A stretch of DNA of 64,000 nt, from NCBI RefSeq assembly GCF_052425735.1, contig NC_135761.1, positions 17,236,001 to 17,300,000 on the forward strand. The letters run 5' to 3'. Below the pieces are notes generated by a model. The model made no database searches, had not been told where the DNA came from, and worked only from the letters and a program-made list of their open reading frames with translations. The stretch is from Oculina patagonica. Lineage: Eukaryota. Both the position numbers and the translations under genes were made by a program. This document shows positions 4,701 to 44,415 of the stretch, piece after piece (the stretch's first letter is position 1; each line of letters opens with the position of its first letter).

Positions 4701-7700
4701 TGAACGTAGTTTATTGTGCGGAAATAGAGGATTGTAGATTAAGTCGGTAAACAGAACTCAGTTCTGATCAATTAGTTGATTCTTCATGACACGCCTGCAG
4801 CAGACATGGAACGGAAATCGAATTTTTCCCCAATGGTCGTACAAATATTACACATTGCACAAAATAAACATGCCATTATAGANNNNNNNNNNNNNNNNNN
4901 NNNNNNNNNNNNNNNNNNNNNNNNNNNNNNNNNNNNNNNNNNNNNNNNNNNNNNNNNNNNNNNNNNNNNNNNNNNNNNNNNNNNNNNNNNNNNNNNNNNN
5001 NNNNNNNNNNNNNNNNATATTGGAATCGCTATTTCTTCGTTTCCTGACTGTATTTTTTCTATTTTTAGTTCAACCATGGTATTTCCCATACTCTTGCTCT
5101 TACGACAATGGTAACTACAACGTGTCTTGGACGTTTAATGAAACCTCAGACAGGTTATATTTTAAAGTGGAAGTAAACACTACTGGCTGGGTAGGCTTTG
5201 GTCTTGCCAATGAAGCCCCAACCAACATGACAGATTACGATGTTGCTGTTGGAGGAGTGTATGATAATGGGTCATGCTACTTGCAGGTAACACGTTTATG
5301 TGACAAATGTATCGGTTTCAGTTTCAGGGAGTCCTTAAACTATTAAGTACACACAAATATATGCAAAGTTTATTTGTCACCTTCACTTTTTTATCTTACA
5401 AACTTTTATCGTATAACCTTTCCTGGAGGACAAATGGTAAATTTTCTAGATAATTTGGTTTTTCAGGAAAGAGTTCTTTATACCCGAAGCAAGTCTAGAT
5501 CATGGCTGGGATTTCATTTATTAGAATGTATGGGTAGTCGTTCCCCCTTCCAACTTGATTTTAACACTCGGGCGTACATGCAAGGTCACACCCCAACGAC
5601 CGTACCGGGGTGAGGGTTGTCCCGCTGTTACAAGACACTAAACTTCCGAGTATGACGTCGTTGAATCCGCCATATTGGATCCACCATTATCTGACTCTTT
5701 TCACTCTTTTCTCATGACGTCAAACAAAACATGAATAGATACAAAATTATTTTAAAACAATAATGCTAAATCGGATAAATATCATAAGAAAGAAGAGATT
5801 TGTACTGAAAATGCGGAATTTTGGTAAACGTGCACGATTCATAAACGATTCTGAGTGGTTTTTTCCTTGTGTAAGTTAATTTATTTTAAGCTGCAAAAAT
5901 TCTTTTATCTTTTTCGACAAAATAAAATAGTTGTTGTTGTTGTGCAAGTCAAATGCAAAGGTAACATATCAAGAACCGTTTACAAAACAACTTTAACATC
6001 AAAAAGTCACCGAGGAATTAAAAACAGCTACTGAATGTCTTTACATCCCAAAGTAAAGTCAATTTTAAAAGTGTCAAAAAAACTCATAGGGGTTAGCATC
6101 CACAACCTTCCCCCAACTTTTATGTCCAAGGGTCAAGAATTTTGTGCGGCAGAACGGTAAGTATAGTATCAATTTTAATTTTCGTACCACCAAATTCATG
6201 TTCCCCGGAAATCGAACTCGTACCTCTTCCTCTCAATATGTTAAGTTTACTTTTTTGTCCTAAACTATTATTGGAATTAAATGAAGGACAACAAATTAGC
6301 TAACTATATTTTTGCCCTTTTCCATTTCTCTTTTTCTTGTTGTTTAGTTTTTGATATAATCATTGTAAATTTTGGAATGGAATAAATAAAAATAATGAAA
6401 AAAAATGAAAATGAAATCGAACTCGATAGCCTAATTTCAAATTTCAATTACTTTATTAGGATTATCTGACAATTGGTTGGAGGCAGCCACAGTTGGATCT
6501 TCAGCAGGACTGGAAATTGATCAATTGCAGTGAGGACAACGGTGTAACAACCTTATTTTTTTGTCGAGCAAAAAACACCAGTGACGAAAATGATACTGTG
6601 GTTGAGGTAACAATATAACCCTTCAAAATTTAACGTTATTCAGTTACCGTAAAAGCTTTATTAAGGGGGCTTGTTTCTTTTTAGGAGCTTTTGAGGTGGT
6701 ATGGGGCTTAATAGAGAGAGGGACCTATTAGAGACGGAGGAGGGGGGGGGGGGGCTTATAGCAAATCGTATATAAGTTGTTGGGGTACATATCAAAGAAA
6801 TAAAGCGACCTGTTTCATGTTTTAGTGATGTTCGATAACACATATTTACAAACATTATAGCAACTATAACAAGTAAATGTGGTAGAATGATTCTCTTAAA
6901 AGCTTCAAATTGTCTTGTTTCCTTGTTCATGAAGTTTCATGATTTATGATCTAGGAAGGGAAGGTGGGCGTCATAGAGATCTTGGCTTATAAAGACTGAA
7001 CATCGGGGGAGGGGATGGCTTTAGAGAGTGGGGGCTTCAAACGAGGAAGGCTTAGTAGAGCTTTTACATGAATGCTGTTTACTGTCAATCATAACAGAAG
7101 ACTACTATTTCGTTATTTTTGGTGACAGCTTGGTAAAATTCGCTCGCACATATCGGTGCTTTTTCGTCTTCTGCTCGCCAGCAGCTGAGACTATTAGGCA
7201 AATATTTTCCTTGGACGATGAAGGAAAGTCCATGGAAAATTCTCTCACTTTAATTCGTTCCTTCATTCCTTTAACTTGTTCTTCAATTCTCTTCTTTCAG
7301 GTTGTCAAAAGCTCGCCAATAACATCATTCTGCTTTCTTTACCAATTAGCGTCCTTACTCAATAGAACACAATGCGATAATTTTTGTGCGATAGTTTGGG
7401 ACATACAATTCATTGTTTATCTCTTGAAATTTTTCGTTGTCTTTTTTCTCGCTCTGATTACGGTATTGACGATGCTGACACTGTTTTTGCTACAGTTTCT
7501 ATCAGAAAATAAAGAAGCCATTTTGAGAATAATCGATAACTGAGCTGCTGTGTTATAAAAAGTAATGATCTAAGTCAGGGATAGGTGAACAATGAATACA
7601 TTGTATCAATTATGTTGTGCATTGGTTCCACAGGAAGGGAAGTCGATTTATATAATATGGGCCTATCATGATACAACTGATGTTACAGATATGTCGTTCC

Positions 7701-19965: not shown

Positions 19966-21526
19966 TTACTTTAGTAATTTATTGACCTGTACATATCGAG
20001 ACACATGCCAAATGGCCATCGAACTAATTGCTTATTTCCGATCAACTGAGTTGGAAAACTGAGAGGAACACACACCACACTCAAACTGGGATTATGGCTG
20101 AAAATAGTTGTCAAGTTTCACGTGAACAAAAACACACTCGTCCATCGTGAAATACAAATCACTTAAACACCCATTGGACTACAAGGAGATGGAATGAGAA
20201 GCTTGGGTTCCCCTTTAACGCCAACCTGAAAATGATACCACTTATACACATTTCCTACCTAGGCAGATAGGCACGCGTTTGACATTCGCGCGATCACTTC
20301 TGGGCACAGAACGTAATCCCACACGTTAAGATTAGCCATCAATCCTTGAAATGATTGTGAGCTTTGAAAGCCACCAGCGAGTGAATCTTGGTCTTGACCC
20401 AGGATCAGCGATCCTCCAGAGCGTATCACGTGACCCACTTTGAAGTTTGTGTCAGCCAGGACCCCGTCTTTGTAAAATTTCAACGAGCCAGCGGTGTTCT
20501 CCCAGGATGTACAAATATGGTGCCATTTGTCGTCATTGGCTGATATGCCTAGATCCCTGTTACAAAAAAAGAAAGACAATAGGCCTTATGCATGATAACG
20601 TCATATGCTCAAAATTCACCACCAAGCCTCGTTTACGGGACTTATTTTCAACCTTCGGCTACCTTTATGCAGTTTTCGCGTGGGTATTCTTTTCATCTTT
20701 GCTTCTTAGGGGATTCGTTCATGATAAAATTTACAAAATCGCACTTCGAAAGCGAGGCTTGGTGGTGAAACTTGCCAGTCTGACGTAAACATGCAAAAGG
20801 GCTATTATGCTATTCTTATGGCTGAAAGAATAAGCTAAATTTGTGTGCACGAGGGATATGTTCGTTCGGCCTTGTCCGTCGCAGGATCCCAGAAGCATTT
20901 TTAGGTCGCCCTAATAGTTAGCTTGTACATTTATTCCCCTTGGTGGAGAGAGGCACTGCACGTGAGAGAAAAGCGACTTGTCCAAGAACCTAAAGGCCGT
21001 GGCAAACGACAACATATTGTTGCGGACACAAAATTTGGGTCCGATACGCAAAAAAATGTTTCTCTTTTTTTTTCTCTTTTTTCGGAATTTTTTTTTTGTC
21101 CCAACAAATGTTTCCGCGTTTGCTCACCCAAGAAACATCATGAGCAACAATGTGTCCTTGTTTGGCACGGCCTTTGCGCAACTACCCCCTCAGGCAGCCA
21201 GGGCTTGCCAAGCAAGATAGCGGGAACAAAAATGAGGCAAAGCCTGCTCACAATATTCATATGCGTGCGGAAAAGGATTACAAAATGAAATGTACGCAGT
21301 TTTAGCAACCACTCGACGTGTTCTGTTGAAAAGCTGCGAATCTTATTGGTCGTTCCACTGTTTTCAATTTAACAAATACGAGCCCGAATTTTCTATGAGC
21401 GAATGTACGGTAGTCAACGAGGCGCAGCAGAGTTGATTATCGCTCATAGTAAACGAAAGCCAGTAGTCTTATTGTTTCAGTACTACCTCTAAACTGATTG
21501 CAGTCCAAAACCTACATTTTTATGTA

Positions 21527-29249: not shown

Positions 29250-29419
29250 GTCTGCGTTCGACCCTAGTTCAGCCATCAGACCAGAGCCCATCCCGGTTCC
29301 CGTAACCTGAAGCGACTAGGAGTATTTCTACTCCCCACACCCCTTCCCTGGATGGACTGATGGTCCATCACAGGTTTATAATTAATTCGCTAGTACGTAT
29401 TTATTCACGTGTATTGAGA

Positions 29420-30430
29420 GATAACCAACTGCACGAAATCATCTCTGCTGTTAACGATGATCTTAAAGAAATTTCAAGTTGGTGCTGTAGAAATTCCCTG
29501 CTCATCAATCCTGATAAAACAAAACTTCTGTTTGTGGGAGTCCCACAACTCATGAGGACTTTACCTGCCACTCTACCATCCGCGACATTATTAGGAACAG
29601 AAATCAAGCCAGTAACTGTTGCAAAGGATTTAGGAGTGTATATTGACTCCCATCTGAATTATAATGAACATATCACTAAAACCGTTTCAGACTGCATTCA
29701 TAAACTAACTAGAGTTAACAGGATAAAGCACCTTTTGGACCAGAAAACCCTGATCTTTCTCATAAATGCCTTTGTATTTAGCAAGTTGTTCTATTGTTCG
29801 ACGGTTTGGAGTAACACAACCAAAGCGAATGTGGGAAAACTCCAGTCAGTTCAAAACTATGCTTGTAGGATCGTAGCTGGCTTAAGAAAGGACGATCACA
29901 TTTCAGGGACCCTGAAATCCCTTCAATGGCTTAGTGTAAAAGATAAATTGCTTTTTAACGACCTAGTAATGGTAAGGAAATGTTTAAATAATGCCACTCC
30001 AAGCTATCTTCGTTTTCAGCGACGTTCAATAACACACACACGTAACACCAGGCAGAAAAACGATCTTGAGCTGCCGAAGTGTAGACTAAAGACAGGGCAG
30101 AGATCTTTTGCCTACCGTGGAGCGAAGCTCTTTAATAACTTGCCTAAGAACATTAGAGAGACAAATGACCTGAACCTTTTTAAAAAGAGAATTTTTAAAC
30201 ATATTTTAAATTTGTAAATGCCCCTTTAACTGTAATGTATATAATTTTAATTGCAAATTTTTTATTTCAACTATACCCCTTTTTTTTCTGATTTTTTTTT
30301 TTTTTTTCTTTTTTCTTCTTTATTGTAAATATTTTTATCTTTTATCTTTTTAATTTCTGTATGGCGGAAGAGCCCCCAAGGGGGAGCTATGCAATAAAGT
30401 ATGTATGTATGTATGTATGTATGTATGTAT
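29420..30430 (+). mobile_element. 5'-truncated L2-type LINE (3' part of ORF2)
   Basis: LLINPDKTK, KDLGVYID, YCSTVWS, LQSVQNYACRIV, DHIS, GQRSFAYRGAKLFN; AATAAA followed by a (TATG)n tail at about 30398-30430. Confidence 0.92.
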
Positions 30431-32982: not shown

Positions 32983-35900
32983 ATGATGTTGGTTTTATTC
33001 GCCTATATTGGCCTTTTCGCTGCAAGGGTCTACGCTAATGAATGCCCACTAACAGGTATCAGTGCTTTGTACTCCAGTATGATCTTCTGACTCTTCCCCA
33101 TGCGCATGTGTAGATGGCTTGCATTACAAACTATATATGAGGAATTTACTCTTCTACGGTCTTGCTTGGGGGCAAACAGGGCAAAAGGTACAGTAAATGT
33201 ATGGGAAAGTGAAGAATCTAATGTCGAATAATTCACGGAAAATTCTAATTCCGAAATAACTTTTAATTACAAACTCAAGATTTCGGGTAAAAGATTTTAT
33301 TGATCAAATTTAGAGAATGTATTCTCGCAGGAAAGCCGCAAATATAATTTTCCCATTTTTACATACATTTGTCTGAAATCCGAGTCGTCGTTTGCGCGGA
33401 AAATTATAAACATATTTGTATGAAAAACTAAAAAATGTCATGTCTCGCTCCCCGCTTCCTTCAAATTCGATCAGTACCTTGTAATTAATAGGAAATGCAG
33501 AATGCAAATTTTTAGTCCTGATACATGTATAATTGGGCATCGAACTCCTCGCTTTTCCCATATACATTTAATGAAAAATTTGCCTGTGTGCGCCCCAAAT
33601 GCAACCAAGATCGATGGCGGCAAAAATCGTTGAAGGGTCTATTGGTCGTAGTGCTTTGGTTACATATTCTTGATAATGTCATGACATAGCGTTCTATATT
33701 CCACTGTTCCACAGACTATGCCCTCGAGTTCCCAAACAAGGATGTAACAGATTACGTGCACATCTGGGGGATGCCCAATTTGACAGAGTTCACCGTGTGT
33801 TTCTGGATGAAGTCGAGTGATAATGATCATGGTACACCATTCAGCTACGCTGTACTAGATCAATCGAATGAACTTCTGATCATAGGCTACGACAGCTTTA
33901 ACGTCAGGATTGGAAACACTTTAAGGTAAGTTCCACCAATTGGAGTGGTTTTCTAATGACTTAATCAGCAAGCGTCTTCTCGCAAATTCTTGTTTGAGAA
34001 ATAAGGTGCAAGCCCCAAAGCAACCTTAACTTGTTTGTTTATGGATGAAATCGAATAATTCCAGTGAGAGTACACCATTTAATTATGCTGTACCAGAACA
34101 ACACAAAACAAGGCAGTATGTTCATTATGACAAAAATAATGAGAGCAAAAACAATCGAACAAATCAAATTACCTTCATTTGCAAGGCCAGCTTTGAACTG
34201 CAAGCCATTGTAAGAGCGATTTTCCAATATTGACATTCGATGGTTCCTGAACACTTTCAGAGCTTATTGCTCCAGCACCTCCCTTACGGACCAACAGTAG
34301 CTCCTATCATTTGATAGCCAAGTCAGACTTATTATTTCGCTTATGCTTGCAACGGTTTGGGTCAGCCGAGAATACTTCCATGTCTTCGTTTCGTTTTCTA
34401 AATAGTAAAACTCGGTTTTTGAAAACAATATATAGTTAACTGATTACGTGATTTAAATTGAAGGCTATTTTGTTGGCCAGAAAATCAGTTTAACAACTTG
34501 TTCTTTTTAAAATTTAATTTCATTTTTTCATGGTTAGCTGTAATCGTTAGCTTAATCAGACTACAGCCAGGAAAGACAAATGCTAGGACCAGAAAAAGCT
34601 ATTGGCCTTGTTGTTTAAAGACTAGGCATATCACTCTCAAGAGATCGTGCCAAGAATTAAAAAAAAAAAACACTCCGCAGAGATGAAAAAAGGAAATGGT
34701 CATAGAAACAGGTTACATCTTCGTGTATTGACTCCAAATTTAGCTACGGCTGTGATAATTTTGTGACAATGCTTTTAAAAATAATTGAGAGTTCTTTTGG
34801 ACTGACAGGGAAACACCTGTCCTAGTTCTATTACCTAACCTTGCCTGCTGGAGTAAACAGTAATGCCACATCACTTTTCTTTCATAAGACAGAGAACTGT
34901 CCGTATCAGCTAATGACGGATATTGGCATCACATTTGCGCATCCTGGGAAAACACCGCTGGATCTTTGAGCTTCTACAAAGATGGTGTCTTGTCTGCAAA
35001 CCATACAAACTTCAAGACAGGATACATGATAAGATCTGGAGGATCGCTGGTGCTGGGTCAAGACCAAGATTCACTTGCTGGTGGCTTTCAAAGGTCACAG
35101 TCATTTCAGGGATTGATGACTAATCTTAATGTGTGGGATTACGTTCTTTGCCAAAATGACATCGCACGGATTTCCAAAGCATGTCTGCATGAGGAACCAG
35201 GTACCGTGTACTTCTCTTCTTCTTCTTCTTCTTCTTCTTCTTCTTCTTCTTCTTCTTCTTCTTCTTCTTCTTCTTCTTCTTCTTCTTTTTTACCCTAGGT
35301 CTTCTCAGTGAGAATAGGGCCATTCATTTGCTTCTTCCATTCCAGTCTGTCTCTTGCAACGTTGACTACTTCTGCGGCGCCCAGGTGGCAAAACCCATCT
35401 TCTGTCTTTCTCCCTCCACAGGTACCGTGTACAAGTGGACAGATTTGAAGCACGGTGTTAAAGGCAAGCCCCGAGTTCTTGTTCCATCACCTTGTGTTTC
35501 ACAAGGTTAGTAGTTCCTGTTCTACGATTGCATGAGTATCAGCCCCAAATTAAACAAACAGCGCATGTAGGCCATTAAACAGGGTCAGCAAGGGGGGAAG
35601 TGGTATACCAATATACCTTCCCGGGGGGGGGTACTCCCTATAATGGCCTATACGGGGAGGCTCCGCCCGAAAGGGGTACCTTTTTCAGGCTTCAGGTATA
35701 TAAAAGGGTAGGGATTTCACGCGTTTAAGTATATGAAAGGGTATGGAAATATGTCATTTGGCTATTTAAAAGGGCCTTTAATTAATATATTTTAAACATA
35801 CGCAATTCATGGCTGTATTATTTTAATTTATTAAGCGCTACATAAAAATGACAAGAAAACGTCCTATTTTAAGTCCATGCCATGTCTCTTAGGTATATGA

Positions 35901-38900
35901 AAGGGGTACCTTTTTTCAGTTAAAGGTATACGAAAGGGGTACAATTCGTATCGTGTGGTGCCGATACTATGCTTTGTATAATAGATTAATTCTATGGAAT
36001 AAGAGTGTGTATCTGCTCCAGTGAAACTAATAAGAAATACTTTTATATGCGCTTCTTTGTCTGTTTCAATATCGTGAAAATGCATGGGGTTTGTGCCTTT
36101 TCAAGTTAAATTAAAGATTCCACACATTATCGCTAGTCGAAGGATCGAATGCTGTGTTTCAGAAACTTGTTTACTTCAGCTAGCTAACCTTATCTTTGCG
36201 ACTTCAGATAATACCACCATAACGCCAAATTCAAAGGCCACCTTCATCTCGAGTTTAGTCAGTTTATCAGAAAGTGATGCAGTGGATGCTTGTTCTGTGG
36301 ATACTTGTTCTGGTAACGATGAGAGTTCCCTTATGTCAGGTACGTCGCAGCTATGTGTGAAATGCAAGAAAATAACAAAGATGGTGAGTCTCTCATGGCT
36401 CAGTAGGTTAGAGCACCCATCCGGTATCTGGGAGGCTATGGGTTCGATTCCCGTCGGGGATCGGACTCGGATTTTTTCTTTGTCCCATGCTCGTGTCATT
36501 GTTGAACAATTCGTCTTCATTGTTAAATGTTTTTAGAAATCTAATTTAAATTCTTGCTTTACGTATACGGTTTTACAGTGAACATTTCTTCCAAAGGCTC
36601 CTGAAAAAGCGAAGAAAACATGAACTTAGAAAGTCAATAGATCCTTCATTTCCTATTTCTATCCTATTGACAATGTTGAGCGACTTTGGTCAGCTTATAA
36701 TTACCACAGCCGGAGGAGGATGGGGAGGGACACAAGACACGCAAGTGCTGCAAGAATATATATGTTATGACATTTTTAGATGAAAGATGCTAGCCTAAGA
36801 AAACGTTACAGACAGGTGACCATCTTGACCACTTACATTAGGCTGGGCTTTACTGTGTAACTATGCATGAATCGCCGTGTCCACATGGATATGGTTGGTA
36901 TGCATTGGGAATGTTTCCTTGTGTCACATTGTAGACCTCTGCTCTGCTTTTCGATGGACGGTGGAAGGGAGGGAGTTAGTCTACTGCTTGTTTCTCACCT
37001 CATTCGAATTCTCTCTTTCATTCCACACTCCTCTTACAGACTATGCACTCGAGTTCCCGAACAAGGATGTGGCAGATTACGTGCACATCTGGGGGATGCC
37101 CAATTTGACAGAGTTCACCGTGTGTTTCTGGATGAAGTCAAGTGACCCTGGTCACGGTACACCATTAAGCTACGCTGTACCAGATCAATCGAATGAACTT
37201 CTGATCATAGGCTACGACAGCTTTAACGTCAGGATCGGAAACACTTTAAGGTAAGTTCCACCAATTGGAGTGGTTTTCTAATTACTTAATCAGCAAGCAA
37301 CCCCCGAGCTCAATAATTAATTCACAAAAAATAGTCAAATGTAACTACGTGTATTATTTATGATCAAGTCAAAGTTTTTCTTTTTTTAGGTATAAAGAGA
37401 TACCCCCAAAAGCAAACTTAATTGTTCTAACACTACGATTCGACTAGTCATGTTTCAGGTTTCAGGCATTTCTTTTTCTGGTTGTTCCCTCGCATTAAAT
37501 AATGCATGAAGACTAGACACAACACAATTTGTAGTGGAATTATCTTAATTATTAACTATAAAACTTAGTTACAGAGATGTCGTGGGTTAGGACGAGCGCT
37601 TTTCATCGAATTGTTCCCGCTCACAGTCACACCTCTTTTCCCTATTCTTATTTACTACACTGCAGCCTTTGGAATAAATAGGCAAATGCACTGATATCAC
37701 TTCTCCTTTGATACAACAGAGAACTGTCAGTGTCTGCTAATGACAACAAATGGCATCACATCTGTTTAACATGGGAAAATACTGGTGGTTCGTTGAAATT
37801 CTACAAAGATAGCGTCCTGTCTGCAAATTACACTGATTTCAAGACAGGATACACGATAAGATCTGGAGGATCGCTGGTTTTAGGTCAAGACCAAGATTCA
37901 CTCGCTGGTGGCTTTCAAAGCGAACAGTCATTTCAGGGATTGATAACTAATCTTAATGTGTGGGATTACGTTCTCTGCCCAGCTGCAATCTCGCGAATGT
38001 CCAAAGCCTGTCTGTCCCAGGAGCCCGGTATCGTATACAAGTGGTCAGATTTGAAGCATGCCCGTAAAGGCAAGCCCCGAGTTCTTATCCCATCTCCTTG
38101 TGATCCACTTGGTAAGTCACTTGTTCGCCGTAATGGCCATGCTGCATCCCCCAACCAAATTTGATAATCTAAGGGCGACCATAACCTTCCTCACTCAGAA
38201 TGAGAAGCTAGTTTTAAAGGCCTAAGTTCTAAGCGAACGATTACTGCGTCGGAACGAAACATCAGATCCAGAAATCTAAGTTCGAGGCTTTAAGGGTACT
38301 TGCGTTGTGTTATGCTCCTGAGAAAACACGTCAATCTTACAGTCTCTCTCGACGTTTGTGCTCGATAAGTTAGTAGCAGCAAATTGGTGGGACAAGCTAG
38401 CATATTTCAAGAAGACACTACAAAAAATATAAACGTATCTGTTTCATGATTTCTACGATTTCAGACGAGACGACTACAGCTACCACCACTGTCATTTCAA
38501 CTAGTACAACGGCTACAATACAAAGCCAGTCAGAAACTCCCACGTCTTTGGTAGACGCGCCAACAACTTCTGCAATAGGTTCAACGGCATCTACTGTTAC
38601 AAGTATAACGGCACCAAGTACTACAACAGATGCAGCTAGAGCAACAACTACAGCAGATGCAGTAGGAGCAACTACCACAGTAGATGCAGAAGGATCCGGG
38701 GAAACTACCACAGCAGTTGCAGAAGGATCCGCAGCAACTACCACAGCCGATGCAGGAGGAGCGACTACCAGAGTGGATGCAGGAGGAGCGACTACCACAG
38801 CAGATGCAGGAGGAGCAACTACCACAGCAGATGCAGTAGGAGCGACTACCACAGCAGATGCAGGAGGAGCAACTACCACAGCAGATGCAGTAGGAGCGAC

Positions 38901-39761
38901 TACCACAGCAGATGCAGGAGGAGCGACTACCACATCAGATGCAGGAGGAGCAACTACCACAGCAGATGCAGTAGGAGAGACTACCACAGCAGATGCAGGA
39001 GGAGCGACTACCACAGCAGATGAAGTAGGAGCGACTACCGCAGCAGATGCAGGAGGAGCGACTACCACAGCAGATGCAGTAGGAGCGACTACCACAGTAG
39101 ATGCAGGAGGAGCGACTACCACAGCAGATGCAGGAGGAGCAACTACCACAGCAGATGCAGGAGGAGCGACTACCACAGCAGATGCAGGAGAAGCGACTAC
39201 CACAGCAGATGCAGGAGGAGCAATTACCACAGCAAATGCAGGAGGAGCGACTACCACAGCAGATACAGCAGAATCAACTACCACTGCAGACGCAGCAGGA
39301 GCAACTACTACGACTGTCGCTGAGAGAACGACAATTACACCATCCACCATCGCTGTTTCGAAAGGTTCAGCACAGAGCTCTCAAGCTACTTCTTCCTTGA
39401 CAGTAAAGATAACCACAACCACAACACGTATTGGGAACGCAGACAGCTCAACAAAGGCTGATCCCTCTTCTACTAAAGTATCATCAACTAAAAACACCAT
39501 AATACCCACCGGCTTAGGTAAGAAACGTATTATCGTTTTTAACGTTTTTTAAAAAACCATTCTAGACTAGAAAATACATCCTGCGAGTTGGACGGTTTAG
39601 TGTGTAGTATTTATAGATGTTTCTATTAAAATTACCTTCTAATGTTTTTTTCAGGTCCAGAGGTAATCATAACCTTGAATGTTGAGAAAGCTTGTGTTTC
39701 TAACACGTTTGTACCATCTTCGCCGCAATACAAGACTTTGGAAACAGGGCTCTCAAACAAT
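32983..39761 (+). CDS. Gene P: signal peptide + two pentraxin domains + Thr/Ala mucin-like stalk + start of SEA-like domain; 3' end lost in the gap
   Basis: Exons 32983-33055 (MMLVLFAYIGLFAARVYANECPLT), 33715-33925, 34893-35200 + 35422-35505, 36208-36339 (linker), 37040-37250, 37720-38111, 38465-39517, 39655-39761. 2571 nt in frame if 35201-35421 is spliced. Pentraxin motifs FTVCFW, FSYA, NELL, WHHIC.[ST]WE, LVLGQDQDSLAGGF, SFQG, NVWDYVL. Confidence 0.82.
35212..35418 (-). mobile_element. 3' end of an RTE-clade LINE with (AAG)n tail, inserted antisense in a pentraxin exon; 14-bp flanking duplication
   Basis: CAGGTACCGTGTAC at 35198-35211 and 35419-35432. Minus strand reads EGERQKMGFATW..EVVNVARDRLEWKK (with a frameshift), resembling RTE C-termini. 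Confidence 0.85.
38620..39310 (+). repeat. Coding 27-bp tandem repeat (ATTTADAGG), about 25 units; stalk of gene P
   Basis: Visible array inside exon 38465-39517. Confidence 0.93.
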
Positions 39762-40127: not shown

Positions 40128-40627
40128 NNNNNNNNNNNNNNNNNNNNNNNNNNNNNNNNNNNNNNNNNNNNNNNNNNNNNNNNNNNNNNNNNNNNNNNNN
40201 NNNNNNNNNNNNNNNNNNNNNNNNNNNNNNNNNNNNNNNNNNNNNNNNNNNNNNNNNNNNNNNNNNNNNNNNNNNNNNNNNNNNNNNNNNNNNNNNNNNN
40301 NNNNNNNNNNNNNNNNNNNNNNNNNNNNNNNNNNNNNNNNNNNNNNNNNNNNNNNNNNNNNNNNNNNNNNNNNNNNNNNNNNNNNNNNNNNNNNNNNNNN
40401 NNNNNNNNNNNNNNNNNNNNNNNNNNNNNNNNNNNNNNNNNNNNNNNNNNNNNNNNNNNNNNNNNNNNNNNNNNNNNNNNNNNNNNNNNNNNNNNNNNNN
40501 NNNNNNNNNNNNNNNNNNNNNNNNNNNNNNNNNNNNNNNNNNNNNNNNNNNNNNNNNNNNNNNNNNNNNNNNNNNNNNNNNNNNNNNNNNNNNNNNNNNN
40601 NNNNNNNNNNNNNNNNNNNNNNNNNNN
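40128..40627. other. Scaffolding gap (500 N)
   Basis: Run of N of round length. Confidence 0.99.
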
Positions 40628-43960: not shown

Positions 43961-44203
43961 CGACCAGTTGATAGGTTGATGGGCTTATGAATTATTAATG
44001 AGTTTTTGAATCGCTCTTTAAAGGCGTTCAGAAATTCCTTTGATGTATGGCGCTGAAGCGTAGATTTTCTACTTGTTTTCGGGCTCTTTCGTTCCAGACT
44101 TGAAAAGCGGTATTGTTTGCATCCAATCTGGGTAGTTGTTTACTTTCAAAGCTTGTTTCACGTGTTGGGCTTCTCTTGTTTTGTCCTCGTCCTCGGTGAC
44201 CAA

Positions 44204-44415
44204 GGTGGCTTTCAAACCTCACAATCATTTCAAGGATTGATGGTTAATCTTAACGTGCGGGATTACGTTCTGTGCCCAGAAGTGATCGCGCGAATGTCAA
44301 ACGCGTGCCTATCTGCCTGGGTAGGAAATGTGTATAAGTGGTATCATTTTCAGGTTGGCGTTAAAGGGTAACCCAAGCTTCTTATTCCATCTCCTTGTAG
44401 TCCAATGGGTGTTTA
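44204..44415 (+). pseudogene. 3' remnant of the same pentraxin pseudogene exon in the right-hand copy
   Basis: GGFQTSQSFQGLMVNLNVRDYVLCPEV...SAWVGNVYKWYHFQVGVKG*; reverse complement of about 20165-20377; 5' part absent; stop TAA at 44369-44371. Confidence 0.82.

Follow-up and report, generated by a model that had tools for sequence, protein, structure and literature searches.

A LINE fragment in a pentraxin exon of the coral Oculina patagonica as a probable recent intron gain at a duplicated proto-splice site

Can a retrotransposon that lands in a coding exon become, in a single step, an intron that the spliceosome removes exactly? This question is raised by a pentraxin gene of the coral Oculina patagonica, located in a 64,000-nucleotide (nt) stretch of contig NC_135761.1 (assembly GCF_052425735.1, positions 17,236,001–17,300,000 of the forward strand), hereafter referred to as the window, to which all coordinates refer. 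In the first pentraxin domain of this gene, the second exon is interrupted by the 3′ end of a long interspersed nuclear element (LINE) lying between two copies of a short direct repeat, and a candidate new GT–AG intron (35201–35421, +; 221 nt) covers the insert together with one repeat copy. The anatomy of the insertion, the evidence that it is derived, its detection in several samples of DNA, and a mature transcript showing exactly the expected junction together make it probable that this is a real, recently gained GT–AG intron, in line with the model in which a transposon inserts at an AGGT proto-splice site.

According to its open frames and Pfam matches, the host gene carries two tandem pentraxin domains of 603 nt, built from two exons apiece, with phase-1 introns and consensus splice sites on both sides. 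Domain A consists of exon A1 (33715–33925, +; 211 nt, phase 1; donor AAG|GTAAGT; Pfam Pentaxin, E-value 4e-7) and the interrupted exon A2 (34893–35505, +; open frames and Pfam), which are separated by the A1/A2 intron (33926–34892, +) with GT at 33926 and AG at 34892. The 5′ part of A2 (34893–35200, +; 308 nt) is open and is matched by Pfam Pentaxin with an E-value of 1.6e-25, and the 3′ part (35422–35505, +; 84 nt) ends at the donor AAG|GTTAGT. Domain B comprises exons B1 (about 37040–37251, +; open frames and Pfam) and B2 (37720–38111, +; 392 nt); the latter is uninterrupted and was used as the paralogous reference for the ancestral state.

At the site of interruption, a perfect 14-nt direct repeat, CAGGTACCGTGTAC, is found at 35198–35211 (left copy, +) and 35419–35432 (right copy, +), where it flanks 207 nt. 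This sequence occurs exactly twice in the window and is absent from its minus strand; a script showed that the identity stops at either end, with 14 matches towards the left and 0 further ones towards the right. The AGGT-containing duplication is thus present on both sides of the insert, and its left copy carries the new donor CAG|GT, with the intron starting at 35201. Next to it lies the LINE 3′ tail (35212–35285, −), composed of TTCTC (35212–35216) and (TTC)23 (35217–35285), i.e., (GAA)23 plus GAGAA on the sense strand of the element. The tail is followed by 133 nt of 5′-truncated LINE 3′ end (35286–35418, −) in antisense orientation to the gene, whose homology may reach 35421. Alignment with the family shows CTG in the element where the copy is truncated; on the plus strand this is CAG (35419–35421), so that the first 3 nt (CAG) of the right repeat copy also match the LINE's own sequence. 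For this reason the duplication may be 11 nt long, with the other 3 nt representing microhomology at the junction, and the LINE, instead of the duplication, may have contributed the acceptor AG.

The boundaries of the 221-nt removal are equivalent anywhere within the 14-nt repeat, and GT and AG flank the removed segment in one register only. In this register (GT at 35201, AG at 35421) the frame is kept: deletion of the 221 nt joins 308 nt and 84 nt into a single open frame of 392 nt, the length of exon B2. The protein restored in this way is 80% identical to that of B2 over 106 residues left of the site, and the likeness continues on the right. If the 221 nt were retained, the frame would pass through poly-Ser and then run into an in-frame TAG (35296–35298, +). 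Both A2 exon parts are open and the 14-nt repeat is still perfect. The original prediction, made from the letters of the window, had described the flanking duplication, the arithmetic of 308 + 84 = 392 nt, the poly-Ser run leading to a stop, and a strong pyrimidine tract contributed by the antisense strand of the element, and each of these was recovered: both repeat copies lie at the exact ends of the insert, the script reproduced the exon length, the stop is the TAG given above, and 19 of the 22 tract positions are pyrimidines. Its further claim that the duplication supplied both splice sites held for the donor, which lies in the left copy, but less well for the acceptor, whose AG is possibly that of the LINE given the 3-nt microhomology.

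On the minus strand, the insert encodes the C-terminus of LINE ORF2 (..ARDRLEWKKQMNGPILTEKT*; the last ~20 codons and the stop), followed by a short 3′ untranslated region. A search of the coral's own genome found at least 40 copies at 74–89% identity, so that the element belongs to a genuine repeat family; none of the copies recovered was full-length. Other copies reach 100–330 nt or more further 5′ with variable truncation points, and many of them end in short (GAA)n tails. Longer partial copies are matched by Pfam DUF6451 (E-value 8e-13) and weakly by RVT_1 (E-value 0.003, below the Pfam cut-off). Taken together, the ORF2 C-terminus, the 3′ untranslated region, the (GAA)n tail, the copy number, the variable 5′ truncation and the DUF6451 and RVT_1 matches identify the insert, as judged from sequence, as a 5′-truncated non-LTR (long terminal repeat) retrotransposon antisense to the gene.

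Compared with the majority sequence of 11 other copies, the exonic copy is 7.9% diverged, within a family range of 4.8–13.5%, and part of this distance may be a subfamily difference; the nearest other genomic copy is 89% identical. Because its divergence is on a par with that of the rest of the family, the insertion is evidently not a fresh private mutation, and the open exon parts and perfect repeat found despite this age suggest continued constraint. Selection on the acceptor was also considered, as the 41 adjoining nt are unchanged vs. 10 differences in the other 85 nt, and was rejected, this stretch being near-invariant in all copies. The exonic LINE copy also carries a 5-nt GCGCC insertion at 35370–35384, which is absent from all 11 other aligned copies and creates CCCAG|G, a possible competing acceptor at 35383.

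Comparison with related exons bears on whether the intron was gained here or lost elsewhere. Exon B2 and an intact pentraxin C-half exon of a different gene (20172–20555, −) are both uninterrupted at the site. In the orthologous two-domain locus of a more distant coral (L037), the exon (6001–6390) is continuous and colinear across the site at about 77% identity. These sequences argue firmly for intron gain at this locus; intron loss in the paralogs is ruled out by the identity of the element, the duplication and the outgroup. A tblastx comparison of L037 with the window for conserved flanking exons gave no match beyond the pentraxin exons. An empty-site haplotig was sought in the 529-Mb assembly, which has 14 large contigs, and none was found, the sole match of at least 90% to the left exon part being the locus itself. 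Among the searched protein collections, which seem to lack the species, no protein of the same species modelled the exon, and the best matches to its 102-amino-acid piece were 80% identical paralogs or orthologs. In JGI metagenome contigs, the junction sequence had 0 matches and a protein-guided scan reached 61% identity at best.

The new acceptor, CCACAG|G at 35421, belongs to a segment (35391–35421, +) in which the antisense end of the LINE provides both the polypyrimidine tract and the acceptor CCACAG|. With 19 pyrimidines out of 22 positions, as compared with 14–18 at the four native acceptors, it is the strongest of the five compared. The new donor, CAG|GTACCG at 35201, matches the consensus at six contiguous positions, −3 to +3. 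TTGAC at 35362–35366 and an A-rich stretch at 35389–35393 are guessed branch-point candidates.

Transcript evidence was sought in four sequencing runs (X1, X2, X4 and X9) mapped on 33400–38400, the contigs of which had been assembled from 31-letter words. The RNA status of X9 was beforehand only a guess. One contig of this run (record 25; species label B; 473 nt, depth 3.6) consists of the segments 33842–33923, 34891–35197 and 35419–35502 with no extra letters, and thus runs from exon A1 through the 5′ part into the 3′ part of A2. Its first joint, 33923 to 34891, is the canonical A1/A2 intron (33926–34892), given a 2-nt AG ambiguity, and its second joint omits exactly 221 nt. The latter constitutes the exact junction …GAGGAACCAG-GTACCGTGTACAAGTGG, with 35197 joined to 35419, which is the same for an empty allele and for spliced RNA. 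Since the upstream intron is canonically spliced and the depth of X9 is zero across introns 34068–34735 and 36573–37073, this contig is mature mRNA. With words of 31 letters, a repeat of 14 nt is too short to produce a false join. The contig shows no break at 35211 or at the junction, which means that the X9 assembly contained no retained form in competition with it, and it differs from the window at 4 of 473 letters. The RNA check for the predicted junction thus delivered the junction itself, in a colony other than those that gave the DNA.

In all four runs, a second contig with at least 90% likeness shows a +1/−1 indel pair at 34919–34923. Its depth is higher in the RNA (26 vs. 3.6), and it suggests an expressed, locally similar close relative of exon A2; the assembly's nearest paralog of this exon is 82% identical overall.

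The insertion was detected in all three of the DNA samples examined, which comprise two species labels and a coral metagenome; as the species names are coded, the two labels may stand for close species or a species complex. Run X2 (label A) shows 0 differences from the window and is probably the assembly's own genotype. Its contig 35297–35408 matches without mismatch at a depth of 40.1 vs. 37.1 in the flank, and represents the locus itself, because the nearest other copy is 89% identical. In X4 (label B, about 2% diverged in introns), an unbroken contig at 35392–35619 leads from the LINE end into the exon at a depth of 142 vs. about 170 in the flanking exon. It starts at the first 31-mer not shared with other LINE copies, and there is no branch at 35419, which an empty allele would force. 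X1, the coral metagenome, represents a different haplotype with three intronic single-nucleotide polymorphisms. It contains 0.78 of 54 sampled words, more than the about 33 that the two exon parts can supply, and hence holds the insertion; its left contig reaches just 34 letters beyond 35204, which would fit an end within the microsatellite. Based on depth and contig continuity, the insertion appears to be homozygous in X2 and X4. An assembly artefact is ruled out by its presence in three independent DNA runs.

The word shares of seven further runs from 2017 (X5 and X11–X16; species label A, 10–60 Mb of contigs) were rejected as evidence, as they cannot separate spliced, empty and partly covered forms. 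These runs hold 0.22–0.54 of the locus words and are probably transcriptomes guessed as DNA.

In the reading favoured here, a LINE would have retrotransposed in antisense orientation into the second exon of the first pentraxin domain, its integration being truncated at the 5′ side after about 130 nt of element plus the (GAA)n tail, with 11–14 nt of CAG|GT-bearing target being duplicated. The left of the two target copies would then serve as the 5′ splice site (CAG|GTACCG), and the antisense LINE end would provide the polypyrimidine tract and the 3′ splice site CCACAG|. The spliceosome would excise exactly 221 nt, i.e., the insert and one repeat copy, so that the resulting mRNA would be identical to that before the insertion, and the insertion, instead of being a null mutation, would act as a new U2-type intron. 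It is on this reading that we infer that the transcript originated from an allele with the insertion, that this allele is at or near fixation, and from which branch point and how efficiently it would be spliced. The insertion was seen on all of the sampled chromosomes (at least 5 by depth), from which the chance that a random colony carries an empty allele is put at roughly one in four.

Several observations weigh against this reading. The donor is the weakest in the gene, with 6 of 9 consensus positions matched vs. 7–8 in the others and C, C and G at +4 to +6, which bears out the caveat raised earlier about GTACCG. The AG at 35383, upstream of the pyrimidine tract and located between the TTGAC candidate and the acceptor, could compete. 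The colonies that gave the RNA (sample S5, study P5) and the DNA (S1–S3) were different, and none of the three DNA haplotypes shows the T-T-G of X9 at 35439/35445/35454. In favour of the reading, X9 comes under the same species label as X4 and shares the 35439 A>T variant with this insertion-bearing run, but it lacks the X4 variants at 35445 and 35454; with such partial sharing, phasing is not decisive. The transcript is a single RNA contig at a depth of 3.6, and X9 shows a depth of 1.07 in the bin 35237–35403, which could stem from family transcripts or from a retained form. Finally, the lack of an empty junction in the DNA runs was judged by contig continuity and depth rather than by direct listing of joints.

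These observations leave some room for other explanations. The insertion may simply break the exon through the frameshift and the stop at 35296–35298 and segregate as a null allele, with the X9 transcript derived from an empty ancestral allele or from a repeat-to-repeat deletion. The spliced product would be indistinguishable from that of an empty allele, the donor is weak, RNA and DNA stem from different colonies, the X9 haplotype matches no DNA haplotype, and deep shared polymorphism is frequent in corals. On the other hand, the insertion is present in 3 of 3 DNA samples under two labels, X2 and X4 look homozygous, and the assembly holds no empty-site haplotig. Moreover, the exonic copy has diverged no less than other members of the family, and a null allele shared across about 2% divergence would need long persistence. 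A segregating null is therefore considered unlikely, though it deserves serious attention.

The exact deletion could also be a product of library preparation, in which reverse transcription or PCR jumped between the 14-nt repeats on unspliced RNA. Template switching is classically recognised by direct repeats on either side of a supposed intron, and with the splice sites inside the repeat, such a junction is not distinguishable from GT–AG splicing. This explanation appears very improbable: products of this kind are minor next to their template, yet the deleted form is the assembled, unbranched X9 contig, no retained form breaks that contig at 35211, and the upstream intron has been spliced out correctly from the same molecule. 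Hardly more plausible is a dead gene or domain accompanied by an unassembled, near-identical duplicate that lacks the insertion and gave rise to the transcript. Pentraxin exons do occur as a large family of tandem duplicates (more than 40 matches), but the nearest other copy in the 529-Mb assembly is 82% identical, whereas the X9 contig is off by 4 of 473 letters, and the depth of the X4 exon is not raised (170 vs. 169–187 in the flanking intron). The interpretation as an intron birth, as originally proposed, is thus supported in part, by the anatomy, the gain and the exact junction; the origin of the transcript in an insertion allele, a solely duplication-derived acceptor and the tentative RTE-type label are its weaker parts.

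As regards the surroundings of the interrupted exon, the A1/A2 intron contains a degenerate partial duplicate of exon A1 at 34030–34101 (…LWMKSNNSSESTPFNYAVPEQ…), which also matches the A1/B1 exons of L037. The A2/B1 intron contains extremely high-copy repeats at 35571–36071 and 36388–36572, with summed contig depths of 1e5–1e6 in the DNA runs, as compared with 40–250 for single-copy sequence, and of thousands in the RNA run X9. ARAGORN predicted a tRNA-Thr-like structure at 36388–36462, and the second of these repeats is probably a tRNA-derived short interspersed nuclear element. Downstream of pentraxin domain B, a Thr/Ala-rich tandem-repeat open frame of 383 codons (38401–39549) is mucin-like and is taken as a putative stalk-forming exon of the host gene; it is followed by an assembly gap (40128–40627). 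A degenerate pentraxin C-half fragment is located at 44186–44407 (+), and the wider pentraxin family includes dozens of tandem copies on contigs C2, C3 and C8. Upstream of the pentraxin gene, a 303-codon open frame (29306–30214) is similar to the C-terminal region of a LINE reverse transcriptase.

Exonic transposons that are spliced from pre-mRNA are familiar from the maize Ds and dSpm insertion alleles, in which cryptic sites of the element are used and the removal is usually imprecise. The coral case is alike in the probable spliceosomal removal of an exonic transposon and differs in that the predicted removal is exact. Transposon insertion into AGGT with duplicated splice sites and an unchanged coding sequence is a textbook model of intron gain (model b in Yenerall & Zhou 2012, PMC3443670), for which there was indirect evidence only in 2012, with 35 events in Oryza, Drosophila, Oikopleura and Zea (PMC3443670). 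The coral locus shares with this model (PMC3443670) AG|GT on both sides of the element, splice sites in or next to the duplicates and exact restoration of the coding sequence. It differs in that the inserted element is a 5′-truncated LINE acting via target-primed reverse transcription with a long (11–14 nt) duplication, and in that the pyrimidine tract, and possibly the AG, come from the antisense strand of the element.

According to the literature, introners recruit splice sites from duplications, and a class in Polarella takes both from an AGGH duplication (bioRxiv 10.1101/2020.10.14.339549). Non-LTR-derived families make up about 5% of the classified introner families (PMC12130899), and a review mentions individual introns that originated from retrotransposons (PMC11282704). 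Introners and the candidate coral intron have in common the derivation from a transposable element and splice sites from the target-site duplication, and a retrotransposon origin is already on record; in contrast, introner families make many near-identical introns, whereas the coral case is one event by an ordinary old LINE family. The new introns of Daphnia and Drosophila (PMC4202315, PMC2809761) are likewise recent animal gains with a short direct repeat and weaker sites than old introns, but they are mostly attributed to double-strand-break repair with filler DNA, while the filler in the coral is an identifiable LINE end and tail. Thus, the route of intron gain is not new, being preceded by the AGGT model (PMC3443670) and by the non-LTR introners (PMC12130899).

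Recent intron gains are rare in animals, and their mutational origin is seldom readable from the sequence. At the coral locus, the causal element and the duplication are intact, paralogs and an ortholog reveal the state before the insertion, and the predicted junction is seen in a transcript. It could therefore serve as an animal case in which the transposon-at-proto-splice-site model can be tested directly, and it indicates how an exonic LINE insertion can escape being null. In its fullest form, the claim would be that of a one-step, precise intron birth in a cnidarian by an ordinary 5′-truncated LINE, shared by two species labels, probably fixed and efficiently spliced, with the donor from the duplicated target and the acceptor and tract from the antisense 3′ end; on this our judgement is evenly balanced. 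If it is true, the antisense 3′ ends of this LINE family would offer acceptors ready for use, and new animal introns would recurrently arise from LINEs inserted into exons at CAG|GT sites.
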